Part shown: positions 22,455 through 64,000 of the stretch, in pieces | Layout of the letters: each line of letters begins with the position of its first letter | Position numbering within the stretch: position 1 is the first letter of the stretch | DNA from: Azolla caroliniana | Lineage: Eukaryota; Plantae; Polypodiophyta | NCBI GenBank assembly: GCA_043228905.1 | Contig: JBHGNT010000016.1 | Coordinates: forward strand, 7,378,001 to 7,442,000 | Length of the DNA: 64,000 nucleotides | Reading direction: 5' to 3' | Notes under the pieces: model-generated | Told to the model about the DNA's origin: nothing | The model's database searches: none | Seen by the model: the letters and a program-made list of their open reading frames with translations, nothing else | Program-made: the position numbers and the translations under genes

Positions 22455-22456
<2 letters not shown>

Positions 22457-22490
<34 letters not shown>

Positions 22491-29227: not shown

Positions 29228-29308
29228 CTCACCCCACCTGAACCCGCACATCCTCCGGTATGTGCCGAAGTTGTTGGAGCTCGTTATTCTCCCTTATTCG
29301 TAGTACTC

Positions 29309-34819: not shown

Positions 34820-34843
34820 GTTTCACGTCGGGTTCACCATTTG

Positions 34844-35584
34844 TGTCGTGGCTTTCGGCGCCGGATCGTTGCGTGAGTCGGTTGGGAACCGTTGGGGTTT
34901 TGGTCAAGGAGGAGGAAGAATTTGAGACGAGTTTAGTTATAAATATGAATAGATTATAAGAAAGAGAGATAAGAAACTCGTGATCCCACGAGTAAAGTGT
35001 ATTAATTAATGTTTTTGGAAGGAATATGAATTTAGATAACAAGAGAGAAATAAATGGCAAATTCGTGAATCCCACGAATATAATATATTAATCAACCCTT
35101 AAAAAAAAAATCAACCACCATATACATCTTTCTCTCTTCCCTATATAGCGATGGAAGAGGCTAACCATAGCATAATGCTTTCCTAAAGTGTTCATGCACA
35201 CTAGATGTCCCTCAATAGCTTCTTCTACCATGCTTTTAATTTCTAAGTATAGTGCTCATGCACTCTAGACGTGAATGAGTAACTTTTTCTTTGTTTGCAT
35301 TTTTCTTCTAAATAAAGTTTTTACGCACTCTAAATGTGCATGGGTTGGTTTTTTATAAAAATAGGCGTAAATATAAGTCTTATACCTATTAAATCTATAT
35401 TTAGATCACTTATGATATGTTAGTACAATGGTGAGGTTTGGGGATTGTTTACATGGAGTTACAAGGTTTGAATCTTGCTCTATGCATATAGTATATATTT
35501 TTATATTTTTCTTCTATTTCTTCATATTTATTTAATCTAGTACTATATACGGTTTTCACATAGTGTACAATATACACTACGACA
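34844..35584 (-). repeat. 5' LTR of the Trp-primed gypsy
   Basis: TG..CA ends; adjacent to the PBS at about 34822-34839. Confidence 0.93.
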
Positions 35585-35664
35585 ATGTAGGTTCATTAAA
35601 TGTCTGATAGAGTGTACCATATGTAACTTCGATAGAAGGTGGTGGACAATATTAGAACGTGGTT

Positions 35665-35689
35665 GCGTGAAAGCATGAGAGTGGAAACA
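35665..35689 (+). repeat. Left TIR of element A
   Basis: GCGTGAAAGCATGAGAGTGGAAACA. Confidence 0.92.
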
Positions 35690-36099
35690 ATTAACTATGT
35701 CCTTGACATAGCTAATTAGCTATGCAAAAAGCTACCATTGATAACTAGTCATTTTAGCAAAAAGCCATCATTAATAAATTAACTATGCAAAAAACTACCA
35801 TTGAAAATACTAGAGTGTTTTAATTACATATGTAAATGAGCACCATAAATGTGCAACATAAACATGCAACATAAATTGATATGTGCACCATAAATGTGTA
35901 CCATAAATTATATATCGAATTCCTAGGTCCATTATGCATGATCCTTTGCCACATCACGTAGGCCATCTCTAGTTGAGTATTGTGGGTTAGTTGCTACCAC
36001 TGTTGCTAAACCCTATCGAGTCCACCTGCCGCCACTCTACACTCAGGGGCCGCTACTGTGAAGGTCGTGTATTGCTGCCACTTTTCGACCCGACGGCAT

Positions 36100-37325
36100 T
36101 AACAACTCCACTGCCGCAATTCTACTCTCAGTTGCCTTTTCTGTGCATTCCAAGCACCATCGATAACTGTTCAATCTGACGGGGTTCTCTCCTCCATTGC
36201 CATCATTCTACACTCAGTTGCCGCTACTGTCCAGTCCTGGATTGCTTCCACATTTCGATTTGACGGAGTTCACTCATCCAATGGCAACATTCTACACTCA
36301 GTTGTCGCCATTAGTTGGTCCAAGATCACCTCCTCAACTATTCGATCCAACGGAGTTAATTCCTGAATTGTTCGGTCTTGGCTTGCAATAACTTTTCTGT
36401 CTATTGATTATCTTGTGCCGCCATTCTACTCTCAGTTGCCTTTTCTGTGCATTCCAAGCACCATCGGTAACTGTTCAATCTGACGGGGTTCTCTCCTCCA
36501 TTGCCATCATTCTACACTCAGTTGCCGCTACTGTCCAGTCCTGGATTGCTTCCACATTTCGATTTGACGGAGTTCACTCATCCAACGGCAACATTCTACA
36601 CTCAGTTGTCGCCATTAGTTGGTCCTGGATCACCTCCTCAACTATTCGATCCAACGGAGTTAATTCCTGAATTGTTCGGTCTTGGCTTGCAATAACTTTT
36701 CTGTCTATTGATTATCTTGTGCCGCCATTCTACTCTCAGTTGCCTTTTCTATGCGTTCCAAGCATCATCGATAACTATTCAATCTGACGGGGTTCTCTCC
36801 TCCATTGCCATCATTCTACACTCAGTTACCGCTATTGTCCAGTCCTGGATTGCTTCCACATTTCGATTTGACAGAGTTCACTCATCCAACGACAACATTC
36901 TACACTCAGTTGTTGCCATTGGTCAGTCTTGGATCGCCTCCTCAACTGTTCGATCCAATGGAGTGAACTCCTCAACTGTTCGGTCTTGGATTGCAATAAC
37001 TTTTCTGTCTATTGATTATCTTGTGCCACCATTCTACTCTTAGTTGCCTTTTCTGTGCGTTCCAAGCATCATCGGTAACTGTTCAATCTGACGGGGTTCT
37101 CTCCTCCATTGCCATCATTCTACACTCAATTGCCGCTATTGTCCAGTCCTAGATTGCTTCCACATTTCGATTTGACGGAGTTCACTCATCCAACGGCAAC
37201 ATTCCACACTCAGTTGTCGCCATTGGTCAGTGCTGGATCGCCTCCTCAACTGTTCAATCCAACGGAGTGAACTCCTCAACTGTTCGGTCTTGGATTGCAA
37301 TAACTTTTCTGTCTATTGATTATCT
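36100..37325. repeat. 304-305-bp higher-order tandem repeat x4
   Basis: Near-identical spurious ORFs at 36197/36501 and 36404/36708; unit starts at about 36117, 36421, 36726 and 37030. Confidence 0.95.
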
Positions 37326-37435
37326 TGTGTATTGTTGTGTCTAATCTTGTGTATTGTGGAATATTTTTGTGTATTGTTGTTGCCCATAGCCATCTTAAAT
37401 ACTTGTTTTTTTTTCTGGAAATTTAGGGTTTTAAT

Positions 37436-40400
37436 ATGTCCAGCCAAATGGAAGGGGAAGAAGGGTGTTTAGAATTACCCCTCAATGATCATAAGGATAG
37501 GGATGATGCTATCAGGACACAACAAGCCATACGAAACTATTGGGCAGAAAAAAAAGAAGGAAACATCGTCAATTGTTGAAGGATATGAAAGCCACACTAA
37601 GTAAAGGTAAGGATAGTTTAGTTGAGAATGTAAGTAATGCGACTACCATCATAGAGAGAAAGGTTGTAGACTATTTCAATGTTCAAACCAAGCACATCAG
37701 CAATGAAGAAAAGAAGGTAGTACTTTATGGAATATTAAATGATCCATCGATAAAGGACTTAGTTGATTGTGATGGTCTTAATGCAAACATATCATCTATT
37801 TTAGTAAATAATCTTCGTAATAGTTTCGTATCCATGAGCAGGTCAGATGATCTTGTCTTAAAAAGGTCTAGTCTAATGATATTACTTAATAGTGATGTTA
37901 AGGATATAAACATCAGTGAGCTATCTAAGGTAATTGGTGTTAGTAGAAAAATAGTGTACAATACATTGAAGTGTATAATTTCCTCAGGTGAAGGAACTAG
38001 TCTACTAAAGGTAACTACAAGATGTAAGCCAATGACACCCATAACATCAAAAATCAAGGATGTAATCACAATGTTTTGGACTAATGAGAGTAGGGTTTCA
38101 CCCAATAAAAAGGCTTTATGTAGGAAACGTGTTGGAAGAAATCAATACGAGGAGCATCCCATTCATCTTCTTGATGTACCTCAGGTATTTACATTTATCT
38201 CAACGTTTGTTTTGACTGTACAAAGAAAGTTAATTAGCTCAGTTAGCAGAAAAGCTAATTAGCTTATCAGTTACATTTACCTCAGTTAGCTATTAGGATA
38301 GCTACTACATAGGTAACTGGCTACTCTCAATAGCTACTACCATGATAGCTAATTAGCTATTCTCAATAGCTAATTTAGTTACTACCAGATAATTAGCTAC
38401 CACAATAGCTAACTAGCTACCATGATAGCTAATTAGCTATTCTCAATAGCTAATTTAGTTATTACCAGATAATTAGCTACTAGAATAGCTAATTAGCTTT
38501 TAGGATAGCGAATTAGCTATTAGAATAGGGTTTTAGCTACCATGATAGCTAAATAGCTACTAGAATAGCTAATTAGAATAGCTAATTAGCTAATTAGCTA
38601 TTAGAATAGGGAATTAGCTATTTAGTTATTAGAATAGGTAATTAGCTACCATGATAGCTAATTAGCTACTATGATAGTTAGCTACTCTAGTTATTACCAG
38701 CTAATTCGCTATCCTAAAAACTAATTAGCTACCATGATAGCTAATTAGCTACTAGGACAATTAATTAGCTACCATGATAGCTAATTAGCTACTAGGACAA
38801 CTAATTAGCCACCATGATAGCTAATTAGCTACTAGACTAGCTAATTAGCTACCATGATAGCTAATTAGCTACAAGGACAACTAATTAGCTACCATGATAG
38901 CTAATAAGCTACTAGAATAGCTAATTAGCTACTAGAACAACGAATTAGCTACTAGGATAGTTAGCTAGTTACGAGAATAACTAATTCGTGGGAGCATCCC
39001 ATTCATCTTCTTGATGTACCTCAGGTATTTACATTTATCTCAACGTTTGTTTTGACTGTACACAGAAAGTTAATTAGCTCAGTTAGCAGAAAAGCTAATT
39101 AGCTTATCAGTTACGTTTACCTTAGTTAGCTAATAGGATAGCTACTACATAGGTAACTGGCTACTCTCAATAGCTACTACCATGATAGCTATTTAGCTAT
39201 TCTCAATAGCTAATGTAGTTACTACCAGATAATTAGCTACCACAATAGCTAACTAGCTACCATGATAGCTAATTAGCTATTCTCAATAGCTAATTTAGTT
39301 ATTACCAGATAATTAGCTACTAAAATAGCTAATTGGCTTTTAGGATAACGAATTAGCTATTAGAATAGGGTTTTAGCTACCATGATAGCTAATATAGCTA
39401 CTCGAATAGCTAATTAGAATAGCTAATTAGCTAATTAGCTATTAGAATAGGTAATTAGCTATTTAGTTATTAGAATAGGTAATTAGCTACCATGATAGCT
39501 AATTAGCTACTATGATAGTTAGCTACTCTAGTTATTACCAGCTAATTCGCTATCCTAAAAGCTAATTAGCTACCATGATAGCCACTTAGCTACTAGGAAA
39601 ATTAATTAGCTACCATGATAGCTAATTAGCTACTAGGACAACTAATTAGCAACCATGATAGCTAATTAGCTACTAGACTTGGTAATTAGCTACTAGAACA
39701 ACGGATTAGCTACTAGGATAGTTAGCTAGTTACGAGAATAACTAATTCGTGGGAGCATCCCATTCATCTTCTTGATGTACCTCAGGTATTTACATTTATC
39801 TCAACGTTTGTTTTGATTGTACAAAGAAAGTTAATTAGCTCAGTTAGCAGAAAAGCTAATTAGCTTATCAGTTACATTTACCTCAGTTAGCTACTAGGAT
39901 AGCTACCACATAGGTAACTGGCTACTCTCAATAGCTACTACCATGATAGCTAATTTGCTATTCTCAACAGCTAATTTAGTTACTACCAGATAATTAGCTA
40001 CCACAATAGTTAACTAGCTACCATGATAGCTAATTAGCTATTCTCAATAGCTAATTTAGTTATTACCAGATAATTAGCTACTAGAATAGCTAATTGGCTT
40101 TTAGGATAGCGAATTAGCTATTAGAATAGGGTTTTAGCTACCATGATAGCTAAATAGCTACTAGAATAGCTAATTAGAATAGCTAATTAGCTAATTAGCT
40201 ATTAGAATAGGTAATTAGCTATTTGGTTATTAGAATAGGTAATTTGCTACCATGATAGCCAATTATCTACTATGATAGTTAGCTACTCTAGTTAGTACCA
40301 GCTAATTCGCTATCCTAAAAGCTAATTAGCTACCATGATAGCTAATTAGCTACTAGGACAATTAATTAGCTACCATGATAGCTAATTAGCTACTAGGACT

Positions 40401-43400
40401 ACTAATTAGCCACTATGATAGCTAATTAGCTACTAGACTAGCTAATTAGCTACCATGATAGCTAATTAGCTACTAGGACAACTAATTAGCCACCATGATA
40501 GTTAATTAGCTACTACACTAGCTAATTAGCTACCATGATAGCTAATTAGCTACAAGGACAGCTAATTAGCTACCATGATAGCTAATTAGCTACCATGATA
40601 GCTAATAAGCTACTAGAATAGCTAACGAGCTACTAGAACAACGAATTAGCTACTAGGATAATTAGCTAGTTACGAGAATAACTAATTCGTGGGAGCATCC
40701 CATTCATCTTCTTGATGTACCTCAGGTATTTACATTTATCTCAACGTTTCTTTTGACTGTACAAAGAAAGTTAATTAGCTCAGTTAGCAGAAAAGCTAAT
40801 TAGCTTATCAGTTACATTTCCCTGAGTTAGCTAATAGGATAGCTACTACATAGGTAACTGGCTACTCTCAATAGCTACTACCATGATAGCTAATTAGCTA
40901 TTCTCAATAGCTAATTTAGTTACTACCAGATAATTAACTACCACAATAGCTAACTAGCTACCATGATAGCTAATTAGCTATTCTCAATAGCTAATTTAGT
41001 TATTACCAGATAATTAGCTACTAGAATAGCTAATTGGCTTTTAGGATAGCGAATTAGCTATTAGAATAGGCTTTTAGCTACCATGATAGCTAAATAGCTA
41101 CTAGAATAGCTAATTAGAATAGCTAATTAGCTAATTAGCTATTAGAATAGGTAATTAGCTATTTGGTTATTAGAATAGGTAATTAGCTACCATGATAGCT
41201 AATTAGCTACTATGATAGTTAGCTACTCTAGTTATTACCAGCTAATTCGCTATCCTAAAAGCTAATTAGCTACCATGATAGCTAATTAGCTACTAGGACA
41301 GTTAATTATCTACCATGATAGCTAATTAGCTACTAGGATAACTAATTAGGCACCATGATAGTTAATTAGCTACTAGACTAGCTAATTAGCTACCATGATA
41401 GCAAATTAGCTACAAGGACAGCTAATTAGCTACCATGATAGCTAATTAGCTACTAGAATAGCTAAATAGCTACTAGAACAACGAAATAGCTACTAGGATA
41501 GTGAGCTAGTTACGAGAATAACTAATTCGTGGGAGCATCCCATTCATGTTCTTGATGTACCTCAGGTATTTACATTTATCTCAACGTTTGTTTTGACTGT
41601 ACACAGAAAGTTAATTAGCTCAGTTAGCAGAAAAGCTAATTAGCTTATCAGTTACATTTACCTCAATTAGCTACTAGGATAGCTACTACATAGGTAACTG
41701 GCTACTCTCAATAGCTACTACCATGATAGCTAATTAGCTATTCTCAATAGCTAATTTAGTTACTACCAGATAATTAGCTACCACAATAGCTAACTAGCTA
41801 CCATGATAGCTAATTAGCTATTCTCAATAGCTAATTTAGTTATTACTAGATAATTATCTACTAGAATAGCTAATTGGCTTTTAGGATAGCGAATTAGCTA
41901 TTAGAATAGGGTTTTAGCTACCATGATAGCTAAATAGCTACTAGAATAGCTAATTAGCTATTAGAATAGGTAATTAGCTATTTGGTTATTAGAATAGATA
42001 ATTAGCTACCATGATAGCTAATTAGCTACTATGATAGTTAGCTACTCTAGTTATTACCAGCTAATTCGCTATGCTAAAAGCTAATTAGCTACCATGATAG
42101 CTAATTAGCTACTAGGACAATTAATTAGCTACCATGATAGTTAATTAGCTACTAGGACAACTAATTAGCCACAATGATAGCTAATTAGCTACTAGACTAG
42201 CTAATTAGCTACCATGATAGCTAATTAAGGACAGCTAATTAGCTACCATGATAGCTAATTAGCTACTAGAACAACGGATTAGCTACTAGGATAGTTAGCT
42301 AATTACGAGAATAACTAATTCGTGGGAGCATCCCATTCATCTTCTTGATGTACCATGATAGCTAATTAGCTACTAGGACAGTTAATTATCTACCATGATA
42401 GCTAATTAGCTACTAGGACAACTAATTAGGCACCATGATAGTTAATTAGCTACTAGACTAGCTAATTAGCTACCATGATAGCTAATTAGCTACAAGGACA
42501 GCTAATTAGCTACCATGATAGCTAATTAGCTACTATAATAGCTAAATAGCTACTAGAACAACGAATTAGCTACTAGGATTGTGAGCTAGTTACGAGAATA
42601 ACTAATTCGTGGGAGCATCCCATTCATGTTCTTGATGTACCTCAGGTATTTACATTTATCTCAACGTTTGTTTTGACTGTACACAGAAAGTTAATTAGCT
42701 CAGTTAGCAGAAAAGCTAATTAGCTTATCACTTACATTTACCTCAGTTAGCTACTAGGATAGCTAGTACATAGGTAACTGGCTACTCTCAATAGCTACTA
42801 CCATGATAGCTAATTAGCTATTCTCAATAGCTAATTTAGTTACTACCAGATAATTAGCTACCACAATAGTTAACTAGCTACCATGATAGCTAATTAGCTA
42901 TTCTCAATAGCTAATTTAGTTATTACCAGATAATTAGCTACTAGAATAGCTAATTAGCTTTTAGGATAGCGAATTAGCTATTAGAATAGGGTTTTAGCTA
43001 CCATGATAGCTAAATAGCTACTAGAATAGCTAATTAGCTATTAGAATAGCTAATTAGCTAATTAGCTAATTAGCTATTAGAATAGGTAATTAGCTACCAT
43101 GATAGCTAATTAGCTACTATGATAGTTAGCTACTTTAGTTATTACCAGCTAATTCGCTATCCTAAAAGCTAATTAGCTACTAGGACAGCTAATTAGCTAC
43201 CATGATAGCTAATTATCTACTAGGACAACTAATTAGCTACCATGATAGCTAATTAGCTACTAGAACAACGAATTAGCTACTAGGATAGTTAGCTAGTTAC
43301 GAGAATAACTAATTAGTTCCCCTTTATTACGCAGGTCGATTTATTTATTAGGTTCAAACGAATGCATCCAAATATCAAAGTTCAACTACGAATATTCGAG

Positions 43401-44794
43401 TCTCTTAAGCCACAGTTTGTGAGACGTTTAAAGGATCGATACACATGTTGTTGCATTTACCATGTACATATGGGTTTTCTGAAGGACTCTTTTAATCTAC
43501 TATGTCACCATAGCGCATCCCTAACTAATACAGTTTGCACATGTCGGTGCCCAATCTGTCGATCAAGCCCGCAAGAGGAGTGTAAATCATCTGAGCACGT
43601 TATCTCTTCCATGAGTTATTTATTAGATTCAATATTGTGTCCGAGAGAAACTGACGTTATCTTCCATAGTCATAAATGTGTCATGGGTTTATGTCAAGAT
43701 TGTGGCCCTACTAGATTTAGGTGGTGTCCAAATGAATTGAGTAGTGAAATATTGATCTTTGTGAAGTTATTTGAGTCAGTGAACACCAATTTCGAAGGAA
43801 AGGTGTGTAAAAGAAAGGATCTAGTTCAGAAGATGCTTAAACCAAGGGATTTGGTGTCTCTGTTTGTAGTATCTCTAGGAAAGTTCTCTAGGATTTGATC
43901 TCTGCTATAACAGGTTTGGAGATGAGATGGAATTTTTTTGGGTCTGGCCATGGTAAAGGTGAACATGATGGTGCAAGGGTTGTTATAAAGCGGGCACTTA
44001 CCCATGAACAACTAAAGACAGATGGTGTGCACATGAATTGTGCATCACATGTAGTTGAATTTTTAAGAACAAATATGTCAACGAGTGCAACAAGTGTTTA
44101 TTCCTCGCAAGTCCGAGATATCAAACGTGAATTTTGGGAAGTGAAGATAGATGAAGTAAATAGGGAGAAGACCTAGGAGTGCCAAGGAATTCCCAAATTG
44201 CGATCTGTGCATGCTGTTCGCGGTTATTCCAGGTTGGATGGTCATTGTATTGCGGTTAGAGAATTGACTTGTTTTTGCTTCCATTGTGTGCAGGGAAATT
44301 GGAGATATTGTCTAAACAAAGCATACATTCAGAATTGGGAGTATCACACTCTGAATGATAAGAGAGCAGTTCATGGAGAAACATGGCAAAATGCTCACTT
44401 CACATATGAGGGACTTGGAGATACTTTGAGTGATGTCCTGAACGTTGGGGATAACTTCGCTGTAAATGCTGAAGAAGGCAATTCAGAGGGTGCTGATTTC
44501 TATATATTGAAGTGCACGGTTAGTAAACAATGTGCAAGGCAGAATATTGTAGATGCATGGGGAAATTTTGTATCTGCTAGGACATTCTACATCGAAGGCA
44601 TTTTTTATGCAAAACTAGATGACTATGAATATGTGTACAAGCTGTTAGAAGACAAACCAACGGCGTACATGTACTCTCATTTGGTCATGTGCATCAACGT
44701 CCCAATGTCAGAATACAATAACTGCTCAGGTTTATACATTGTTGGTGCTAATGTGTATGAATGTATTTACAATAGTATGCCATGGAATTTGTAG
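37436..44794 (+). pseudogene. Sola2-like transposase (family A), spliced, central catalytic segment deleted
   Basis: ATG at 37436; frameshift in an A-run near 37550; exon 1 ends 38184; phase-0 intron 38185-43334 joins HLLDVPQ|VDLFIRFKRMHPNIKV..LKP..TCCCIYH. Deletion near 43890, then WNFFGSGHGKGEHDG; a TAG at 44174; C-terminal domain to 44794. Confidence 0.87.
38185..43334 (+). repeat. 5.15-kb intron filled by a higher-order array (about 760-1080-bp units) of TAGCTAATTAGCTA satellite
   Basis: Unit marker GGAGCATCCCATTCAT at 38151, 38991, 39752, 40692, 41532, 42325 (partial) and 42612. Confidence 0.93.
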
Positions 44795-45472
44795 CTACAA
44801 GTAGCAATTACCATGTTCTCTTGTAAAACAAACATGTATTTCGCGAAAATAGTTAAATAAATTCGTTTGAGAATCAATTTCTTGTATATAGCCAGTACCT
44901 AATTAGCTGCCAGTAGCTAATTAGCTGTCACTAGCTAATTAACTGTCAGTAGCTAAATAGTCGTCAATAGCTAATTAACTATCAGTAGCTAAATAGTCGT
45001 CAGTAGCTAATTAGTTGTACATATGCAGCTAATTGATAACCAGTAGCTAATTAGCTGTCAATAGAACCATGTACAACAGTATGCCATGGAACTTGTAGCT
45101 ACAAGTAGCAATTACCATCTTTTCGTATAAAACAAACATGTATTTCCAAAATACAATTAAATAAAGCACTAGCATGAAATCAACAATCTGCAACATATTC
45201 CTCAAATTACACAGTAGATAAGTACAGTGGGAACAAGTAATTAAATTCTTCATTGAATAATGTCATCTCTTTACATATTTATAAATCACCATTGGAAATG
45301 TCTACAAATCTCCTATAAACAGCTAAGCTCTTGCTAGTCAGTGGAACGAGTCTACATATATTATCCGCATATCGAGCTCGGTATGGAGTCCACAACCATG
45401 CACCTAGTTGGCAGCTCACTATTTGCACCAGGTACTGTTCAAGCATTTCCTTGGGTAGAATGAGACAGCATC

Positions 45473-45767
45473 TGTCATGATATGGCAAGACTCGAACCCA
45501 TGACCTTAGGTTATATGGGTCGAGCTCTTGACCATTAGACCATCTATTGTAATACGTAGGATATTATTTTCATTTACATTTTATTATAGGAAATTAGTGT
45601 ATATTCCAGATTTCTCTGGAACATTCTAGAAGCTTCAGGATTACTCCTGAAAACACTATAAAAGAGGGCACTAGGCATTTTGTTGAACCAAATTGGTTCA
45701 ACGCCAGTCTTAAGCCTTTTAGCCACCGTTGTATATTCTCTTCATATAATAAATATCTTTCTTATCA

Positions 45768-45808
<41 letters not shown>

Positions 45809-45912
45809 GTCTCACTCACTTCTTCCTTCTCTCGAAGAAGTTCCACACCTCTCATAGTACTAATCCTTCGTTTAGTACTAATTCCTTCTCTGTCTCAGTA
45901 CTGTTCATGACA
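45473..45912 (+). repeat. 5' LTR of the chromovirus
   Basis: TGTCATGA...TCATGACA ends; TATA box CTATAAAAG near 45656. Confidence 0.97.
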
Positions 45913-45913
45913 G

Positions 45914-45926
45914 TTTGAACCAATTT
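45914..45926 (+). promoter_or_regulatory. Self-priming primer-binding site
   Basis: TTGAACCAATTT is complementary to AAATTGGTTCAA at 45690-45701, about 30 nt downstream of the LTR TATA box. Confidence 0.8.
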
Positions 45927-45985
45927 GCCTACCTTCTGTCTCTCTCATTTCCTACTAATCTTTTATTCCTATTTTCTTTCATCCC

Positions 45986-46961
45986 ATGGCCACTGTTAGC
46001 GCTGAAGAATATCAATCTGTTTTCTCGGAATTCCAATGCTTCAAGGAGAAGTTCCATGCTTTGGAACAAGAAAACCAACGGTTGCTGGGGGATCTTCAGC
46101 AAATCTCCTTAGAAAAGCAGCAAACGCAACAACAACATGGGGAACTTGCGTTACGCGTGCAACAACTCGAAGCCACCATCGTAGCAATGCAACAACATGG
46201 GCCCGGAACACAAGGGATTCATAAAGAACCTAAGATTGGCCTTCCCACGAAGTTCGATGGAACGCGATCGCAGTTTAGAGGGTTCCTTAACCAGGTACGA
46301 TTAGTTATTCAAATGCATCCTTCCCGATATCCCACCGATGCATCACGAGTGGGTTTAGTAGGCACTTTGTTAAGTGGCTCAGCGTTGTCATTGTTCGCTC
46401 CACTATTAGAAAAGGAATCTCCGTTACTCAACAATTCTCCGTTATGGTTTACGCAACGACGTCAAGGATTTACTCTTGACCTTCCCCGAAGAGCCAAAGT
46501 CCTTAACAGAAGCAATCAGTCGCGCGGTGAGATGTGACAACCGCCTCTTTGAGCGACGTTCGGAACGACAGCTACAGACGCCGAGGGCAAGATCAGAGCC
46601 CACCTACGCCTCAGTGGTAGCAAGACCTTTTCCGAGGGAGTCATATAATGCGTCTCCAGCGAATACTCCGACTCCGATGGAGATTGACACTACACGTCGT
46701 CGAGGGCCATTATCCGAAGAAGAAAAGCAACGACGCCGTACAAATCGACTATGTCTTTACTGCGGTGGACCAGGACATATCGCAATAAATTGCCCCCATA
46801 GGCCAAGAAGACAGGTAAACCAAATAGTCACTAGTTCTAATTGTACTAAATCCGAACCTATTTCAGTAGGGATATCTGATAGTCCTAATAGTACTAATAT
46901 CCCAGATCTAGCAAACAAATTTGATGTCCTTAGTCAGTTAGAAGAAGAGTTAAACGACTAA
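45986..46961 (+). pseudogene. Chromovirus Gag (frameshift or deletion near 46435-46476)
   Basis: Coiled-coil-like start, PTKFDGTRSQFRGFL, PMEID and CLYCGGPGHIAINC zinc knuckle, split over two frames. Confidence 0.88.
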
Positions 46962-46993
46962 GTCCAGCCAAAATAGGAGCCGTTTGGTTGGAC
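46949..46993 (+). promoter_or_regulatory. -1 programmed ribosomal frameshift signal (G_UUA_AAC plus stem-loop)
   Basis: Slippery heptamer 46949-55, 6-nt spacer, 11-bp stem GTCCAGCCAAA/TTTGGTTGGAC (one G-U). The -1 frame is open and is the pol frame. Confidence 0.78.
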
Positions 46994-49900
46994 AGCCCTA
47001 GATCTGTGCAGCCCATTAGTGGTTCCATTCCCTCTAAGCAAGTTAGTGATGTGTTCGTAGCCCAAGTAATAGTTAGTACTAAAAGTACCCCTCCAGTACA
47101 TGTCCTAGCACTCCTAGATTCCGGAGCTAACTCTTGCTTTATGGATAAGAAATTTGCTCAAGCTCATAAGATATCCCTAAGAAAACTCCAGTGTCCAGCC
47201 TCTGTAGTAGTCATTGATGGACGTCCCATTGCTTCCGGAAATATCCTAGAAGAGTCAGAGCCCATTAATATTGTCCTAGATAACTTAGTATGTGTAGTAT
47301 CATTTAATATTATTAGTATCCCAGAACATCCTATAGTTTTAGGACTACCGTGGTTCGAGTTACATAACCCTGACATAGATTGGAGAACAAGAGAAATCCG
47401 GTGTCGACAAACCCAAGGGTCAACTCAGAAGATGGCAACCATTTCGCTACGTCAGTTGCGTAAAGAAGGGCACAAGGAGGAAATGTTCCTCTTTGCAATA
47501 TCAGTAAACCCCTCCAACACCACTAAAGAAGAATCCACCGTTCAACTTCCCGAGAAGTATCGCCATTACACCGATGTGTTCGATAAAGTACAAGCCAACA
47601 CACTTCCTCATCATCGACCGTACGATTGCCCCATCGATTTACAACCGGGAAAAGAGCCGCCATGGGGACCGATCTATAATTTGTCACCAACCGAGCTGGA
47701 AGTCCTTCGGGCCTATATAGAGAAGAATTTGGAAAATGGTTTCATTCGGCATTCGAAATCTCCAGCCGGTGCGCCCATTTTCTTCGTCAAGAAAAAAGAT
47801 GGATCGCTTCGTCTCGTTGTAGATTACCGTGGCTTGAATAAGGTTACAATTAGGAATAGGTATGCTCTTCCCCTTATCTCAAGTCTTTTAGAACGGATCA
47901 ATGGTGCCAGGTTCTTCACGAAGATCGACTTACGGGGAGCATATAACCTCGTACGGATCCGACCAGGAGACGAATGGAAGACCGCGTTTCGCACCAGATA
48001 TGGGCACTTCGAGTATACTGTCATGCCGTTCGGCCTCACTAATGCGCCGGCAGTCTTCCAGCACATGGCTAATGATATATTCCGAGATCTATTGGATGAT
48101 TGTTTGATCATCTATTTGGATCATCTACTGGTTTATTCAAAGACCCAAGAAGAACATGATTCTCATGTACTATTAGTACTAAAACGACTTCGAGAACATG
48201 GTCTGTATGCAAAGCTAGAAAAATGTAGTTTCGGGTGCAACCAAGTGGAATTTCTCGGCTACATCATTTCGTCAGAAGGCATCTCCATGGACCCAGCTAA
48301 GGTCAGAACGGTGGTAGAATGGCAGACTCCGCGTTCGGTACGGGATGTGCAATGCTTCTTAGGCTTTGCCAATTTTTACCGGAAGTTCATACAGGATTAC
48401 TCAAAGATCGTTCTACCTCTCACACAACTTACCAGGAAGGGACAACCGTTCACCTGGTCTGAAGAAACGGACATGGCTTTCGAGAGTCTTAAAAAAGCAT
48501 TTACATCGGCTCCAATTCTAGCTCATGTCGATCCGGAGAAACCATTCATTATCGAAGCTGACGCATCGGATTTTGCATTGGGGAGCATTCTGTCACAACA
48601 GGGGAATGATGAAAAGCTACATCCTATGGCTTTTCACTCACGCAAGTTTGATGCTACCGAAATCAACTACGAAATCCATGATAAGGAGCTATTGGCAATA
48701 GTGGATTCTTTTATGCAATGGAGGCATTTTCTGGAGGGATCCTCTCATCCAGTCACCGTATTTAGTGACCACAAGAATCTTGCCTACTTTCAGGATGCTC
48801 GTGTGTTGAATCGACGTCAAGCTCGGTGGGCCCACTTCCTCACGCGTTTCGACTTCAAAATTACATATCGTCCGGGGAGGCACCAAGGGAAGGCAGATGC
48901 ATTATCACGGCGTTCATATCTAGCACCCCGTCCCGGCGAGCCAGCTTTCGATAACCAAAAACAAGTCATCTTGGGACCGGCACGATTACAAGCAACACAA
49001 ATCTTTGACATGCCTATGGATTCCCGCGTTATCGATACCATACGTGAAGACTTGAAGACAGATGCGTTCGCCCAAGCTATACTAGCACAAATTGATCCCT
49101 CTCGAGCGTCGTGTTCACAGTCGCAACCACCAGGTACGGACTATCGGCAATTCAAATACCATGATGGATTACTCTTCTTTAAAGAACTTTTGTATGTTCC
49201 TAATGGTTCTTGCCGCCTTCGAGTAGTACAAAACTGTCATGACACATATACAGCTGGGCATTTTGGTAGTACTAAAACATTACATTTAGTACAACGATCA
49301 TTCTGGTGGCCCTGTATGCGACAATTTGTCGAGGATTTTGTTCGGACTTGTGATACATGTTGCAGAGCGAAAATGCCAAGGCATCATCCATATGGTTTAT
49401 TAGAACCATTATCAATTCCAAGCAAGCCGTGGCAATCCATTGCTCTAGACTTCATCACAGATCTTCCAGTCTCTAAGGGGTTCAATGCGATTCTAACGGT
49501 GGTCGATCGATATACGAAGATGGCTCATTTCTTGCCATGTACTAAGGAGATCTCCAGTGAAGACACTGCCGAAATTGTCATGCGTGAAGTATGTGGGCAT
49601 CATGGACTCCCCGATAGTATCATCAGCGACCGTGGACCCCAGTTCGTGTCAAAATTCTGGAAGCACCTTTTTAACATGCTCAAGGTCACTTGTAACCTCT
49701 CTTCCGGCTACCACCCACAAACTGACGGCCAAGCTGAACGAACAAATCAAACGTTGGAGCAGTATCTGCGGTGCTTTCTCAGCTATCATCAGGACGACTG
49801 GGCAGATATTCTCCACTTCGCCGAATTTGCCTATAACAACTCTATCCACGCATCCACTAAAGTTACGCCATTTTATGCTTATACGGGATGTCACCCCCGG

Positions 49901-50545
49901 TGGAGTGTACTTGAAACCCCAGAGGTGTCCACAAATCCGTGCGCGGAGGATCGTTTGGAGCGGTTACGCAAGATACAAGCGGATTTATCTACTCATCTCC
50001 AGCAAGCTCAACAAACACACAAGGTCTACGCGGATCGTCATCGACTTCCATCTAGTTTTAATATTGGAGATCGGGTGTGGTTGCTACGACGACACATCAA
50101 GACTACTCGCCCATGTGAGAAGTTGGATTATCGGCGATTAGGTCCTTTCCGTATTATTGGAAAGATTAATGATGTTGCTTTTCGTCTCGACCTACCTCCT
50201 CAACTTCGGATACATCCGGTGTTTCATAGTTCTCTCTTCGAACCCTACCACGAGAGCACCATCCCAGAACGTCTTATCCAACCTCCACCCCCGATCGAGC
50301 TTGAAGATGGGCCAGAGTACGAGGTTGCCGCCATTCTTGATTCCAAGATTGTTCGCAACAAGCTCTATTATCTAGTCGATTGGCTAGGCTATAGTCCCAG
50401 CGAACGTACTTGGGAACCGATCGAGAATGTAACCAATGCTCGTGCTCTTCTTGAAGACTTCCATCGTCAATATCCACACAAACCGGGTCCTCAATCCAAG
50501 ACGACTCGTGACACTCGTCGTTTTAAAGGGGGGATAGTGTCATGA
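46988..50545 (+). CDS. Pol polyprotein: protease, RT, RNase H, integrase, chromodomain
   Basis: 1185-aa ORF with LLDSGA, YLDH (normally YLDD), DASD..ELLAI..DH..ADALSR, HHCC plus DDE integrase, GPF motif and the chromodomain EYEVAAILD..YLVDWLGY..TWEP. Confidence 0.95.
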   Translation: MDSPRSVQPISGSIPSKQVSDVFVAQVIVSTKSTPPVHVLALLDSGANSCFMDKKFAQAHKISLRKLQCPASVVVIDGRPIASGNILEESEPINIVLDNLVCVVSFNIISIPEHPIVLGLPWFELHNPDIDWRTREIRCRQTQGSTQKMATISLRQLRKEGHKEEMFLFAISVNPSNTTKEESTVQLPEKYRHYTDVFDKVQANTLPHHRPYDCPIDLQPGKEPPWGPIYNLSPTELEVLRAYIEKNLENGFIRHSKSPAGAPIFFVKKKDGSLRLVVDYRGLNKVTIRNRYALPLISSLLERINGARFFTKIDLRGAYNLVRIRPGDEWKTAFRTRYGHFEYTVMPFGLTNAPAVFQHMANDIFRDLLDDCLIIYLDHLLVYSKTQEEHDSHVLLVLKRLREHGLYAKLEKCSFGCNQVEFLGYIISSEGISMDPAKVRTVVEWQTPRSVRDVQCFLGFANFYRKFIQDYSKIVLPLTQLTRKGQPFTWSEETDMAFESLKKAFTSAPILAHVDPEKPFIIEADASDFALGSILSQQGNDEKLHPMAFHSRKFDATEINYEIHDKELLAIVDSFMQWRHFLEGSSHPVTVFSDHKNLAYFQDARVLNRRQARWAHFLTRFDFKITYRPGRHQGKADALSRRSYLAPRPGEPAFDNQKQVILGPARLQATQIFDMPMDSRVIDTIREDLKTDAFAQAILAQIDPSRASCSQSQPPGTDYRQFKYHDGLLFFKELLYVPNGSCRLRVVQNCHDTYTAGHFGSTKTLHLVQRSFWWPCMRQFVEDFVRTCDTCCRAKMPRHHPYGLLEPLSIPSKPWQSIALDFITDLPVSKGFNAILTVVDRYTKMAHFLPCTKEISSEDTAEIVMREVCGHHGLPDSIISDRGPQFVSKFWKHLFNMLKVTCNLSSGYHPQTDGQAERTNQTLEQYLRCFLSYHQDDWADILHFAEFAYNNSIHASTKVTPFYAYTGCHPRWSVLETPEVSTNPCAEDRLERLRKIQADLSTHLQQAQQTHKVYADRHRLPSSFNIGDRVWLLRRHIKTTRPCEKLDYRRLGPFRIIGKINDVAFRLDLPPQLRIHPVFHSSLFEPYHESTIPERLIQPPPPIELEDGPEYEVAAILDSKIVRNKLYYLVDWLGYSPSERTWEPIENVTNARALLEDFHRQYPHKPGPQSKTTRDTRRFKGGIVS

Positions 50546-50835
50546 TATGGCAAGACTCGAACCCATGACCTTAGGTTATATGGGTCGAGCTCTTGACCAT
50601 TAGACCATCTATTGTAATACGTAGGATATTATTTTCATTTACATTTTATTATAGGAAATTAGTGTATATTCCAGATTTCTCTGGAACATTCTAGAAGCTT
50701 CAGGATTACTCCTGAAAACACTATAAAAGAGGGCACTAGGCATTATGTTGAACCAAATTGGTTCAACGCCAGTCTTAAGCCTTTTAGCCACCGTTGTATA
50801 TTCTCTTCATATAATAAATATCTTTCTTATCATCA

Positions 50836-50869
<34 letters not shown>

Positions 50870-50973
50870 GTCTCGCTCACTTCTTCCTTCTCTCGAAGAA
50901 GTTCCACACCTCTCATAGTACTAATCCTTCGTTTAGTACTAATTCCTTCTCTGTCTCAGTACTGTTCATGACA
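50538..50973 (+). repeat. 3' LTR of the chromovirus
   Basis: Direct repeat of the 5' LTR. Confidence 0.97.
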
Positions 50974-52559
50974 GCATCTCTGAATATCGAAGTAGTGCCG
51001 GAAATGTTCTGTATCCAAAATCAATGTGTTGTCAACATTATATTCAGGCCAAGTAGCCCAAAAATCAAAAAATCTCTTGAATCGTGCAGCTTCCATTTGC
51101 TCACAATTTTCTCGTGCCCATTGACCTTTAAAATGACTTCGCCATTTTGGGAAGAACCTCGCTAAACACTCCCACACATCTGATTTTGGTTTTTCACTCC
51201 AAATAAACAAATCAAAGTATTGCACAGCCCACTCTAGAAACTGATTCGCGTCCCTCCTTGGCTGCATATATCTCACACTCATCAAGAATTTATCAAGCTC
51301 CAAGATCAAGGCTCTTCTTTCGACTTCTAGTGGTTTAGGTTTCCATTCCTGAAACTGAGCCGTTGTTACACCATTTTCTGGTAGGACACGATCAATCTCA
51401 ATCAGCTCAGGTTCTGCTGACACAATTGGCGTCCTTTTCCTCTTCAAACCCCTAGTCGACTATGTTGGGCCTCGCTTCACATTCTAGTGCTCTTGTTTTG
51501 TCGACTTAGTTATCAATCCTTGGATTACCTCGGTGCATGTAGCTACTGATCTGCTCAATATAAGTCCACTGGTATCACATGTTGCATCTACCTACAACAT
51601 CAAGTCATCCATGCAACATGCTTGATCAACTTGTGTGACCAGATCACTTGTGTTAGTTGCTACATCTACTTTCAAGATGGGGCCCTTTAAACACGCCGCA
51701 AGATCAACGGTATCCACACTGCCATCGGCCTTACGAGCAATACAATCAAACCCTTTAGACTCTACAACATCAGAAAACACCAACATATTCTCACTCACAA
51801 AGTAACTAACAATCTCACAAAACAACATAATGAACTTTAAAGAGTTTCAGTCATAGAACAACACTCTTCAAATTATCTTGGAAAAACATCATAGAGTTCC
51901 ATTACATAATGTGGATCAAGCAACAACCAATCGGAGGTTTTACTTCTCCAACAGGATAGCAAAACTTCATAAAACCCTAGCAAAATCCCTAAGCTAACAA
52001 TCATATCCAACTAAACAGTATTTCGTTCCACTACGTCTGGGCCCCTTGACCGAGTAACTGGTCTTGTTCCCGATCGTGGCCCCTTCTTCAACCTTTTTCT
52101 GGTCGGTTGCCCATTTAGCCTTGCTTCTTTCACCCAATGCGCAAGTGTGTCCTCCTCCGACAACCTGCCCATCGGCTCAGCAGCTAATTGCACATCAGTC
52201 GTTTCTTGTACTAGCTTTTCAAGTACAGAAGGATCTGTTTGGACATTTTCAGTAGTTGGGCTCGGTGGGGTGGAATCAAGGTCTTGAGATTCGAAGAAAT
52301 GTTGCATCAAGTGTTCAAAAACACTGTTGTTGTGAACGTCAGTTTTACATGTTGTTTCCACTATTTCATGGCATTTCACATCGTTGCCTAATTCAGTACA
52401 CTGTTCCAAAAGAATAGGGTGGAGCTTATCTGAAGGAGATGTGATAGCAGGACTCTTTACTTTCAGCCACGTTGGCAGCTATCTCCTCATCTGTTGCAGC
52501 GTCATCAGCACCACACACATCATGTGCTGTCCTTAATCCACAAGATTCTACAATAACAT

Positions 52560-53400
52560 GGCAGCTATTTAGGATAGCTAATTAGCTACTTTACTAAACT
52601 ATGGTAGTAGCTAGGATAGCTAATTAGCTACTTTACTCAACTATGGTAGTAGCTAGGATAGCTAATTAGCTACTTTACTCAACTACGGTAGTAGCTAGGA
52701 TAGCTAATTAGCTACTTTACTCAACTATGGTAGTAGCTAGGATAGCTAATTAGCTACTTTACTCAACTATGGTAGTAGCTAGGATAGCTAATTAGCTACT
52801 TTACTTAGTTATGGTAGTAGCTAGGATAGCTAATTAACTACTTTTCTCAACTATGGTAATAGCTAGGATAGCTAATTAGCTACTAGGATAGCTAATTAAC
52901 TACAATGATAGCTAATTAGCTACTTTCTCAACTATGGCAATTGCTAATTAGCTAGTAGGATAGCTAATTAGCTAGTAGCTCATTAGTTGCTAGTAGCTAA
53001 TTAGCTTTTTTACACAACTATGGTACTAGCTAATTAGCTATCATTGTAGCTAATTAGCTATCCTAGTAGCTAATTAGCTATCCTAGTAGCTAATTAGCTA
53101 CTAGGATAGCTAATTAGATAGTAGCTCATTAGCTGCCAGTAGCTAATTAGCTAGTAGGATAGCTAATTAGCTACTTTACACAACTATGATACTAGCTAAT
53201 TAGCTAGTAGCTAAGTAGCTGCCAGTAGCTAATTAGCTGCCAGTAGGATAGCTAATTAGCTAGTAGCTAACTAGCTGCCACTTATCTAATTAACTACTGT
53301 AGTAAACTATGGAAGTAGCTAATTAGCTACTAGGATAGCTATTAGCTGCTTTAATCAACTATGGTAGTAGCTAATTAGCTACAACGATAGCAGCAAAATA
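52560..53400. repeat. TAGCTAATTAGCTA satellite (39-bp units) in the intron after the RING exon of A
   Basis: GGATAGCTAATTAGCTACTTTACTCAACTATGGTAGTAGCTA tandem units. Confidence 0.95.
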
Positions 53401-53467
53401 GTTTCCATATTTTTTACGGCTTAACTAATTAGAAAAGACTAAGCTTATTAGCTACAGTATGGTATAC

Positions 53468-53807
53468 CTGTTAGTTTTCTCCACTCATTTGGCAGAGTTG
53501 TACTGCAATCTCCCAAACAGAATGCAGCAATTCGACAGGCATATTGAAAACAAAGCAGATGGTATGTGTGGTTGCATGGTTGTAGGTGAACCAACAAAGA
53601 CGCAGTTTTCTCCTCCACACCTAACCCGCAAGCGATGCAACGTGCTTGAATTGTCAATAAATCATTTTCTGGTTCTCCTTCATTTGGTAAGGGAGCAAGA
53701 ATGTTCAGGTCCAAATCCTGTCTGCTCCTTACCATTCCCTCCACAAAATGTAGCTGCTTCTTAAGACAGCTAACTACCTGTTCTTGATGAATGTATTGCT
53801 CCTTCAA
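53468..53807 (-). CDS. RING-H2 zinc finger exon
   Basis: CIAC..PCNHTYHLLC..CLGDC gives a C3H2C3 pattern; ends at a CAG|GTATAC donor. Confidence 0.85.
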
Positions 53808-54754
53808 CGCAACAGAGAAATTTACCGATTAATTATTCTTGTCTGAGAAAGATACACCAACTTTGCTCAGGAATCGTTAACTTACTTGAAGCTTTTCCAA
53901 ATTGTAATCTGCAACAGTATTTACACCTAGAAGGTCCAGGTTCATTGAAAGAACCTGGATCTCTATTTGCAGTTGTATTTTACGTTGGGGATCCAGTGGC
54001 CCCTCTAATTCAAGCTCCTGTTGCGCAACCTATTCCAGATAAGGCTTGATTAGCACATTTTACCCTTAAAGTTATTTATAACACAATCACATACCAACAA
54101 AACAATAGTTACCTGAATCTTATTTCTAATCATTGTAACAACGGAAGTAACTTTGCTCTCCATTGCAGAAGCCATTGTGGCTTTCTCTAAATCAGTCTTA
54201 AAAAAGGCCAATGCCTCACAGGCTTTATGGACATTTTTTAGCATATAGCGAACCAATGTCTCACCTGTATCATCGACATTGGCTTTCCTTGGGTGTCGGT
54301 GTGGTGTATGCCCCAGGTTTTGCTGGGAGTCGGCAATTGCATCAACAGCTGCCATGCTCCAAAATTTGTCTATTTTTTGTGCCAAGGTCCCCATCTTTCG
54401 GCATCTTTCTACCGATGCCTCACCATTGACTGCCCAAGCTACCCTCTACATTTCAGGGTCTCTGGATTCCTTCGTTGTTTTGCAGTACTCATATGCAAAT
54501 GCTCTAGCAAATGAAACTGACAACTCATTGTTGACTAGGATCTCCTGATAAACTTTTTGGTGCAGCCTCATGCAATCATCGTACAAGTCGGCTCATACAT
54601 GCTTCAGCTTGACCTTGCCTTTGACTCTAGGCACTGCATATACTATCATCCACCCTCAACTAACAAACCATAGGTGTTGTGGAAGTCCTCCTTTGTCTCA
54701 CAAAATTTTGCGAAGTTTAGCACTCTCGGATAAGGAGGAACGAGCCATCTGAAA

Positions 54755-55560
54755 TATCAAATCAGAAATCAGAAATAGTGCAAAATCAGAATATGTCAGA
54801 ATCAGAAACCCCAATCAACAACAACAGAAATAGTGCAAAATCATTAACTTAGCAAATCAGAAACCCCTTTCAGAAATTGCAATCAGATATTTGTAAACAG
54901 AAACCCTAATCATAATTTGCATTCAGAAATTTGAAATCAAAAACCCTAATCAAAATCTGTAATCAGAAGTTTGTAACCAGAAACCCTATTTAGAAATTCT
55001 AATCAAAACCCTAATCAGAAATTTTAATCAGAAACCATAATCAGAAAATTGTAACCAGAAACAGAAACCCTAATCATAATTTGTATTCAGAAATTTGAAA
55101 TCAGAAACCCTAATCAAAATCTATAATCAAAAGTTTGAAATCAAAAACCCTAATCAAAATCTGTAATCAGAAGTTTGTAACCAGAAACCCTATTCAGAAA
55201 TTCTAATCAAAAATTTATAATCAAAAATCCTAATCAGAAATTTCAATCGAAAACTGTAATCAGAAATTTCAATCACAAACCCTAATCAGAAATTTATAAA
55301 CAAAAACCCTATTTAGAAATTCTAATAAAAAATTTATAAACAAAAACCCTATTCAGAAATTCTAATCTGTAATCAAAATTTGTAACAAGAAAGCCTATTT
55401 AGAAATTCTAATCAGAAATTTATAATCAAAAACCCTAATCAGAAATTTCAATCACAAACCCTAATCAGAAATTTCAATCACAAACCCTAATCAGATATTT
55501 CAATCACAAACCCTAATCAGAAATTTATAAACAAAAACCCTAATCAGAAACCCCAATCAT
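54755..55560. repeat. Degenerate AAACCCTAATCAGA repeat in a 5' intron (55604-54749) of accessory gene A
   Basis: Many AAACCCTAAT and AATCAGAAAT units between a GTATG donor and a CAG acceptor on the minus strand. Confidence 0.85.
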
Positions 55561-56059
55561 CACTAAAGACAAGATTAAACACAAAAAAAGTAATATAAAC
55601 ATACCTGCTGCTAGTCCCCGATCTGCTAGTCCCCTATTCGATTTTGGGGAAATATGAATCGGCACCAAAGTTCAAACAGTAGTAAAAAAGAAAAAACAAA
55701 TGTTTGGGGTTTCTGTAACTGAAACATACCTAGATGATGATCGAGCGGGTTTTGTGTTGTAGCTTTGAATCTGCAATGTCGATTTTCTGCTGCTGCGGGA
55801 GCTACGTCTACATTCGTGCTCTGAGTACTCCATTTGCATTCAAAATCAAACTTAGGCTAAACAGGAAATTGATGACATTGAAGTCGACCTTAGATGATGG
55901 TGTTATTCCCCAAGTTTCACTACATCTGAAACAGAAGTTCAAATATTTGAGTTTTTTCATAAATTAGTTTTTCAAATATTTAATTTTCCCACAAAAAAGA
56001 CTAGCTAAACAAATAGTTAATTAGCTATGGCCATTTTAGTAGCTAATTAACTATAATGG

Positions 56060-56084
56060 TGTTTCCACTCGCATGCTTTTACCC
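56060..56084 (-). repeat. Right TIR of element A
   Basis: Reverse complement reads GGGTAAAAGCATGCGAGTGGAAACA. Confidence 0.92.
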
Positions 56085-56212
56085 GGTTCGCATTCTCATC
56101 TACCATTTCGTGCAAAGATATTCATATAGAGAGTCATGATTGGTGGGCTCCCGTTAGGTTTAGCCTTAAAGAGACGAGGATTAGGGTTCGATACTTGTTT
56201 CTTTTGCACCGT

Positions 56213-62400: not shown

Positions 62401-64000
62401 ACGAGCGACTGAGTCGGTTGGACCAGTCAGATGAAGAGACGGCAAGTGGTGGAGACTCTGTCGTGCTCTCCCCGCGCAAGGAACCAAGGAAACGGTTCAC
62501 GCGCAAAGAGAAAGGGAAGAGGAAGACGCCGGAATTCGAAACCGGCAACGATGAGTCGGATCGGTGCGTATCCGACTCCGGAAAGAAGAAAGGCGGATCT
62601 TCGGCAATGAAGACCGAACTGGCCAAGAAGGGCCTCAAATCAGGTGACGGTGCGTTGCGCCGATCAACCCGCCAAAAGGATCCCGTCATGCGGTACGGGT
62701 ACAATGAATACATGGCGCATCATTATGCGTACATGTCTAAGGTAACAGAAGTGTGTGAGCCGGAGAGCTACGCAGAAGCGGCAAAGGACGCAAATTGGCG
62801 TGCCGCTATGGACGAAGAAATGTGGGCACTCGATGCCAACGAAACTTGGGACCTAGTTGATCCTCCCCATCACTGTAAACCGATCGGATGCAAGTGGGTG
62901 TACAAGGTCAAGTACAACGCCGACGGTTCTGTTAACTGGTACAAAGCCCGGTTAGTGGCGAAGGGATACGCGTAGACCCACGGAAACGACTACGACGAGA
63001 CCTTCGCTCCTGTGGCGAAGATGGCGACAGTTCGTGTGGTACTGGCGGTTGCTGTGGCAAGGGGGTGGCATCTTCACCAGATGGATGTGAAGAACGCCTT
63101 CCTTCAAGGAGAGCTTGAAGAAGAAGTCTTTATGACTCAGCCCCCCGGATTTCAATCGGAGATGAACAAATCGGCGGTATGCCGACTGAAGAAGTCGCTT
63201 TACGGCTTGAAGCAAGCCCCCTGAGCTTGGAACGCGAAGATCACGCACTGGTTGCATAAGCTGGGGTTTGTTGTCTCTAAGGCTTTGACGGTCCGGTATG
63301 TATACTCTTGTCTGTGAATGATTTAGTCATCACCGGACCGGGTCTTCCCGAAATCAACCGCGTCAAGTCCCAGTTGTCGGACGCATTCGAAATGAAGGAC
63401 TTGGGGGACCTTCATTATTTTCTTGGGATCGAAGTGATCCGGACCCCCGACGGCATATTGCTCTCACAACGACATTACGTGTTGAATATGCTGTATAAGT
63501 TCGGCATGACGGATTGCCGACCTGTCTCCACACCCCTGGACCGGAACCAGAAGCTCCGTCCCAACTCCGGAACGGCTTGCAATGAGAAACGGTTCCGACA
63601 GGTTGTCGGAAGCCTGATCTACTTAACCATCACCCGACCCGACATCAGCTATCCGGTCGAGATGGTAAGTCAGTTCATGCAGGAGCACCTTCAGTGCGCG
63701 CAACGTATATTACGGTATGTTAGCGGCACTAAGGACCGGGGACTGCTATACCGGCGAGGTATACCCGAAGACCTTGTCGGTTACACAGATGTTGACTGGG
63801 CTGGCGATGCGTCTGATCGCCGCTCCACTTCTGGATACATGTTCTCCATAGGTAGCGCGGCCGTTGCGTGGAGCAGCAAGAAGCAGCCCACATTGGCTTT
63901 GTCAAGCACTGAGGCTGAGTATCGGGCCACTACCGTTGCCACTTGTGAAGCCATTTGGCTTCGGCGACTGCTGCGAGAATTGCGGATCGAGGTAACAAAC
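59495..64000 (+). mobile_element. Ty1/copia element running off the window
   Basis: 5' LTR 59495-59899 (TGTTGAG..TTCA); PBS TGGTATCAGAGC 59900-59911; gag, PR (DSGTS), integrase, RT and RNase H (DVDWAG..RRSTSG) with stops and frameshifts. Confidence 0.94.
59994..64000 (+). pseudogene. Copia gag-pol polyprotein, disrupted
   Basis: ORFs 59994..60548, 60536..60826, 60950..61702, 61428..62975 and 63012..63224. Confidence 0.9.

Follow-up and report, generated by a model that had tools for sequence, protein, structure and literature searches.

A decayed Sola2-type DNA transposon with a RING-H2-like and phosphatase-like second gene in the fern Azolla caroliniana

A window of 64,000 nucleotides from Azolla caroliniana (contig JBHGNT010000016.1 of assembly GCA_043228905.1; positions below count from the first letter of the window) contains, at 35665-56084, a unit of 20,420 bp in which a plus-strand gene with transposase motifs converges on a minus-strand gene with a RING-like finger. 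The locus raises two questions: to what class of DNA transposon does the unit belong, and is the minus-strand gene a component of the transposon or a host gene caught between its ends? On the evidence set out below, the unit is very probably a defective and non-autonomous member of a plant Sola2 family of high copy number, whose intact members carry two convergent genes.

A discrete insertion of a copy that has since decayed

The unit ends in terminal inverted repeats (TIRs), of which the left, from 35665, reads GCGTGAAAGCATGAGAGTGGAAACA and the right, in reverse complement and ending at 56084, reads GGGTAAAAGCATGCGAGTGGAAACA; the two agree at 22 of 25 positions. A third copy in the window, ending at 3787 on the minus strand, has the consensus terminus of the family, GGGTGAAAGCATGCGAGTGGAAACA, intact. 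Insertion is best supported by a paralogous empty site, in that the 45 bases to the left of the element are found again at 28295-28339. When the two flanks were joined, one GGTT was removed and the product was aligned to the window, it matched 28295-28464 without gaps at 153 of 170 positions across the junction, with a single GGTT in that place. The element thus entered by one discrete insertion that duplicated 4 bp, and its target is a repeat of the long terminal repeat (LTR) type. At 28486-35570 lies an LTR retrotransposon whose LTRs, about 730 bp long, are 93-97% identical and whose gypsy-type RNase H is encoded on the minus strand; the repeat that contains the empty site borders it on one side, and the paralogue of that repeat is on the other.

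The preliminary description of this locus had proposed TIRs of 25 bp, a 4-bp GGTT target-site duplication (TSD) and a length of about 15 kb without a nested gypsy element, all of which are borne out, the last at a measured 14.9 kb. It had also treated 5'-GRG termini as a Sola2 character, and here agreement is partial. The termini in question begin GGG (GCG at the mutated left end), and among published Sola2 ends those of DFa-2 and DFa-3 begin GAG, but those of DFa-1 and PPa do not clearly conform.

What can be said of the two genes in this copy? The transposase exons were searched one by one, with no joined spliced protein model, and three coding parts are recognisable on the plus strand (Table 1). 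In relatives, the second and third parts are separated by about 150 residues that hold the first two catalytic aspartate (Asp) blocks, DFxEN and WSDG..FK (D1 and D2). A profile of this D1-D2 block gave 0 matches in 35665-56084, and matched the second Sola2 element of the window with an E-value of 7e-16. The catalytic triad of this copy is incomplete, with the third-Asp (D3) motif alone in place. Moreover, the third copy runs from the start codon to the basic region in one frame, whereas this copy needs a frame change near 37545; the third coding part has an in-frame stop, and a 5-kb repeat array interrupts the gene. The spliced transposase first reported from this strand is therefore there in its LKP..CCCIYH and GHGKGEHDG motifs but not as an intact gene, and we infer that no transposase can be made from this copy. 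A 97-bp direct repeat (44765-44861 and 45069-45165, 87% identical) lies between the convergent genes and duplicates the last transposase codons and the stop.

The minus-strand gene has fared no better, with two stops, a small deletion or frameshift, and a gypsy element in its last exon. Its first exon, damaged here, is intact over 239 codons in the outside contig L005. Family members on other contigs run uninterrupted across the gypsy site, a family profile matches both halves of the last exon (51459-50959 and 45476-45306), and in run X1 there are contigs that connect 50982 with the sequence of 45447-45472, representing gypsy-free copies. The gypsy insertion is thus secondary, and the 99.5% identity of its LTRs indicates that it is also young. 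When it is removed in silico, the frame of the last exon continues for 63 codons to a stop near 45282. Both genes are broken and the copy is dead. It would be movable only with a transposase from an intact relative, an enzyme it could use because its own ends have stayed almost intact.

The minus-strand gene is a selected gene of the transposon family

The minus-strand gene was initially described as a multi-exon RING-H2 gene. A RING-H2-like exon is indeed present on the minus strand, delimited as 53448-53807 or as 53451-53828 (Table 1), but the gene is not RING only, since a domain like those of FCP1/NIF proteins follows; exon borders throughout were inferred from homology only. The RING Cys/His ligands are conserved among 11 copies, the last Cys pair being C-x3-C in this family, against C-x2-C in the second element. 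The Pfam model zf-RING_2 matches 9 of these 11, all below the curated cut-off (best E 4.7e-4), and the ten best Atlas neighbours of the exon are all RING families (scores 0.86-0.89). On this sequence evidence we refer to the exon as RING-H2-like.

The C-terminal domain resembles the FCP1/SCP (NIF, PF03031) phosphatases of the carboxy-terminal domain (CTD) in that it exceeds the Pfam NIF cut-off (26.1 bits against 21.8); the model is matched by four of nine family members, with a best E-value of 2.2e-8. In contrast to those enzymes, all copies that cover the site have ELDK(V/F) in place of DxDxT, and so lack the catalytic nucleophile Asp, a position set by eye as the Pfam alignment begins after the motif. 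The segment from this motif to the RPxxxxFL block is also much shorter than in the Pfam profile, and a profile of the domain found no sequence match among solved structures. The domain is probably a pseudo-phosphatase. The N-terminal domain is conserved and predicted to be helical, in a model of low confidence. Protein searches with the accessory exons returned only short ENA/JGI contig fragments of the same family, and no distant or named relative.

The families differ in their palindromes. We counted 78 copies of the palindrome TAGCTAATTAGCTA in this element and 16 in the third copy, and the rest of the window has none; of 27 occurrences of TTAGTACTAA in the window 23 are in the second element and four in the nested gypsy. 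In both families one palindrome copy lies beside each terminus, and arrays are found in noncoding parts, both within the transposase gene and downstream of the RING exon. The array at 38151-43316 is a higher-order repeat with unit sizes of 760-1080 bp. Each unit contains the final 108 nt of the transposase's first coding part, indicating that coding sequence was amplified together with the palindromes. In other plant transposons, subterminal repeats are bound by the transposase. The palindromes here fit putative binding sites for a family-encoded protein, whether transposase or accessory protein.

The accessory protein itself may be an adaptor, putatively non-catalytic, or an E3-ligase-like factor, and could serve expression, transposition or defence against silencing. 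A more specific proposal is that it forms, with the palindrome arrays, a sequence-specific anti-silencing or self-activation system similar to that of VANC. The sites bound by VANC are noncoding tandem motifs, specific to each family (PMC5735166, PMC10398659), and here too each family has its own palindrome (78 plus 16 copies of one, and 23 of the 27 window copies of the other in the second element), arrayed in noncoding parts of both genes. VANDAL elements with VANC, which are of the Mutator type, likewise are plant DNA transposons with an extra element-specific gene and fast-evolving, family-specific noncoding tandem motifs, but they belong to another superfamily and VANC is an unrelated protein, so that the likeness is one of analogy only. 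Moreover, no DNA-binding domain is recognised in the accessory protein, and the palindromes may be plain transposase-binding subterminal repeats. We regard a VANC-like system as a doubtful, though conceivable, account; equally tentative is the idea that a dedicated RING-H2-like/pseudo-CTD-phosphatase protein and its palindromes would constitute a self-recognition system evolved independently of VANC.

Alternatively, the gene may have no role in the transposon, being either a captured host fragment (Pack-type cargo) or a host gene between two element ends. DNA transposons often pick up host fragments, the NIF-like domain is similar to CTD phosphatases of the host, and Sola2 relatives in Riccia sorocarpa are without the gene. 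However, the TSD and the empty site bracket the unit as a whole, and the RING exon is common to both window elements (E 6e-8), placed convergently on the minus strand in each, although the two exons are only 42% identical. The gene is also conserved in three outside contigs (L004-L006). In L005 the order is as here, from subterminal 40-bp repeats through an intact exon 1 and the RING exon to a palindrome array, while L006 represents a different family, with an exon 1 only 52% identical; there the gene start is preceded, at a distance of 1.8 kb, by the family terminus GGGTGAAAGCATGCGAGTG.

Abundance and selection argue in the same direction. In four runs from four organisms we found 3,175-7,509 contig variants per run over 50979-56300, at 88-100% likeness, and every bin of this interval is covered in all four. 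Single unitigs on the RING and NIF exons reach depths of about 1,700-2,000 in a run of only 281 million letters, where summed depth is not equivalent to copy number. Because of these thousands of variants and the high unitig depth, a single-copy host gene is excluded. Between the accessory gene and close copies the ratio of nonsynonymous to synonymous substitution (dN/dS) is 0.4-0.7, and between L005 and L006 dN is 0.34 with synonymous sites saturated, values which indicate that the gene is under purifying selection. Capture of a host gene is accordingly improbable, and the data support a family-borne accessory gene, in line with the dedicated accessory gene suggested at the outset. Since the Riccia copies do not have it, the gene is lineage-restricted.

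The transposase belongs to the Sola2 class

No Pfam model covers the transposase. The D3 block is common to exons of both window elements (E 4e-19), and a phmmer search with the GHGKGEHDG exon of the second element recovered 430 relatives at E-values up to 0.001, including a transcript of Klebsormidium subtile, proteins of Riccia sorocarpa and animal proteins of 600-990 residues, the last with E-values down to 5e-9. Thirteen relatives with a complete core have 80-95 residues between D1 and D2 and 37-42 between D2 and D3.

Published Sola2 sequences were compared with these as printed text, by eye and with short patterns, for motifs and spacings. The core of Sola2-1_HM (Majorek et al. 2014 supplement, PMC3985635) reads GDFAENYTF..EIQSYHW..SLHPLVIYY..CFISDDITHD..LFTDGCAGQYKN..VEWNFFATSHG, with a D1-D2 spacing of 84 counted by hand from the printed core, and the dictyostelid Sola2 transposases (supplement of PMC3627910) have MDFKEN..FSDVLNH..FWSDGAKHFKS..YHGKSDVD, with spacings of 87 and 43, again hand-counted. 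These blocks recur, their order unchanged, in the Riccia, Klebsormidium and window sequences, and WNFFGSGHGKGEHDG of the window corresponds to WNFFATSHG of Sola2-1_HM. Motif by motif, then, the link to Sola2 appears strong. Together with the 4-bp TSDs at two elements, this shared motif order and Asp spacing supports the Sola2-like class already proposed for the element.

Set against its references (Repbase Sola2-1_HM, Dictyostelium DFa-2 and Polysphondylium PPa-1), the plant lineage shares the 4-bp TSD, short TIRs and the blocks DFxEN, FxSDDxxHD, (S/T)DGxxxx(F/Y)K and HGKxxxD, alike in order and spacing, and, with the dictyostelid elements, a large size of 10-15 kb. Unlike them, it has GC-containing TSDs (GGTT, TGTA) where theirs are AT-rich, termini of the form GGGTGAAAGCATGC, family-specific palindrome arrays and a second gene for a RING-H2-like and pseudo-phosphatase protein. 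That the element instead belongs to another superfamily with 3-4-bp TSDs (Chapaev/CMC or Academ) and resembles Sola2 only superficially could be argued from the missing Pfam match and the comparison of references by motifs rather than by formal alignment, but is very improbable given five ordered motif blocks and both Asp spacings that match Sola2-1_HM and DFa-2, and termini that are not CACTA-like.

Several observations weigh against our reading of the element as a two-gene Sola2 transposon. The Sola2 link is an agreement of motifs and spacings with printed sequences, with no direct computed reference alignment; all RING matches in Pfam fall below the cut-off, and the last Cys pair is spaced x3; the NIF-like domain is undetectable in the second element by family profile search; and the AlphaFold2 models are unusable (predicted local distance difference test, pLDDT, of 46 for accessory exon 1 and 47 for the RING exon). 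In addition, none of the RNA runs searched contains the stretch, and three Sola2 loci of Riccia sorocarpa have other downstream open reading frames (ORFs) in place of a RING/NIF gene. As for the outcomes that the preliminary description had named as contrary to its case, none of the three applies, whether a transposase of another superfamily, other full-length copies without the RING gene, or a RING gene that is a single-copy syntenic host gene. On our reading, an intact member of the family carries one gene for a Sola2 transposase with three catalytic Asp residues, comprising a helix-turn-helix (HTH)-like N-terminus, a Cys-rich region and an RNase H-like core (DFxEN, WSDG..FK, HGKGEHDG), and a second for a protein in which a helical N-terminal domain is followed by a RING-H2-like finger and, at the C-terminus, an FCP1/NIF-like domain without the nucleophile Asp.

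Table 1. Features of the element at 35665-56084 and its target-site duplications, in window coordinates
Feature	Position	Strand	Remarks
Left TSD copy, GGTT	35661-35664		directly abuts element end
5' TIR	35665-35689	+	two changes from family consensus
304-bp tandem repeat, four copies, 5' subterminal region	36112-37329		repeat analysis
Transposase, N-terminal coding part	37436-38262	+	ATG at 37436; weak HTH match; frameshift near 37545
5-kb array, six units of about 840 bp of 20-bp TAGCTAATTAGCTA palindrome repeats	38151-43316		inside transposase gene
Transposase, part with LKP..CCCIYH and Cys-rich region	43326-43898	+	frame ends where D1-D2 block expected
Transposase, part with third-Asp motif GHGKGEHDG and C-terminal domain	43895-44794	+	one frame, in-frame stop at 44174-44176
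3' piece of last accessory exon, NIF-like end and stop codon	45282-45472	-	severed by gypsy insertion
Nested gypsy chromovirus	45473-50973	+	LTRs of 441 and 437 bp, 435/437 match; TSD GCATC (45468-45472, 50974-50978)
FCP1/NIF-like exon (Pfam PF03031)	50979-51459	-	ELDKF at expected DxDxT position
Two middle ORFs of accessory gene region	51592-51828, 52011-52409	-	no recognisable domain; candidate exons
Palindrome array (TAGCTAATTAGCTA)	52570-53400		between RING exon and middle frames
RING-H2-like exon	53451-53828	-	C-x2-C-x17-C-x-H-x2-H-x2-C-x10-C-x3-C
Accessory exon 1, conserved helical N-terminal domain	54053-54756	-	stops at 54595 and 54448; about 50 nt missing near 54592-54649
40-bp tandem repeats upstream of accessory gene, 3' subterminal region	54858-55550		repeat analysis
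3' TIR	56060-56084	-	one change from consensus
Right TSD copy, GGTT	56085-56088		directly abuts element end

Other copies, known systems and implications

The window holds two further Sola2 copies. The second element, strongly diverged, lies at 12166-22815 with the TSD TGTA and termini GGGTCGAAGCATGC.., and its removal in silico restores a canonical junction between a copia LTR end and primer-binding site (PBS), TACA joined to TGGTATCAGAGC; by the established PBS rule, the element was inserted exactly at this junction. No paralogous empty site was found for it. Its plus-strand transposase is degenerate (LFEN, WSNG, stops) and its RING exon is at 19796-19987 on the minus strand. The third copy, at 1400-3787 on the minus strand, is of the same family as the element at 35665-56084; it has ATCC next to its perfect consensus terminus, includes the 304-bp repeats, a palindrome array and the beginning of the transposase, and is truncated near 1400, from where the sequence is unrelated. 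A further candidate terminus, at 25687, lies inside the conserved copia reverse-transcriptase motif LYGLKQA and was taken as a chance match. The window (1-64000) is transposon-dense throughout, with these three Sola2 elements, gypsy elements and copia fragments (6816-7799, 11602-12006 and 60950-62975), and no host gene was identified among its scanned ORFs of at least 180 amino acids.

Outside Azolla, three loci of Riccia sorocarpa (GCA_046195345.1; L001, L002 and L003) carry nearly intronless Sola2 transposase ORFs. In all three the frame breaks directly after HGK and resumes about 200 bp further on, as the result of an insertion or an intron. More than 11 kb is common to L002 and L003, with additional ORFs of 348 and 335 residues in the shared part. 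The catalytic core is left out of the annotated gene models, one of which (KAL3685613.1) goes under the name of an F-box domain protein. Among animal Sola2-type transposases, P0078, P0144 and P0062 carry C-terminal fusions, either to a Ulp1 C48 protease domain (P0078, Pfam E 1.4e-12) or to an OTU-like segment with a DGNCLPRC motif. Extra protein-modifier domains seem, from such sequences, to recur in Sola2.

How new is the arrangement? Plant Sola2 itself is not, given that 56.7 Mb of the Cryptomeria japonica genome has been annotated as Sola-2 (PMC11539532). Second genes are not without precedent either: dictyostelid Sola2-Fanzor1 chimeras are Sola2 transposons with a second large protein gene, for a TnpB-like Fanzor nuclease, and deletion derivatives without most of the transposase coexist with full-length elements (PMC3627910). 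The two-gene layout with deletion derivatives is common to both systems, but the second gene here encodes a RING/NIF-like protein with no nuclease signature. The layout had been put forward as unlike any described Sola element, and this holds for the nature of the second gene, as our literature search found no paper describing a RING or phosphatase-like second gene in Sola2, but not for the presence of a second gene as such (PMC3627910).

The element described here defines a plant lineage that is very abundant, has exact ends and a proven 4-bp duplication, and carries a second gene under selection. Sola2 is among the least studied of the cut-and-paste superfamilies, and no member has, to our knowledge, been studied biochemically or for its transposition. 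For genome annotation the lineage is also a hazard, because its RING and NIF exons could pass for host E3 ligase or phosphatase genes; the related Riccia copies, annotated as host genes with models that skip the catalytic core, are a precedent. The lineage offers a concrete system in which to ask what role second genes play in DNA transposons, and whether the repeat arrays specific to each family may serve self-recognition.

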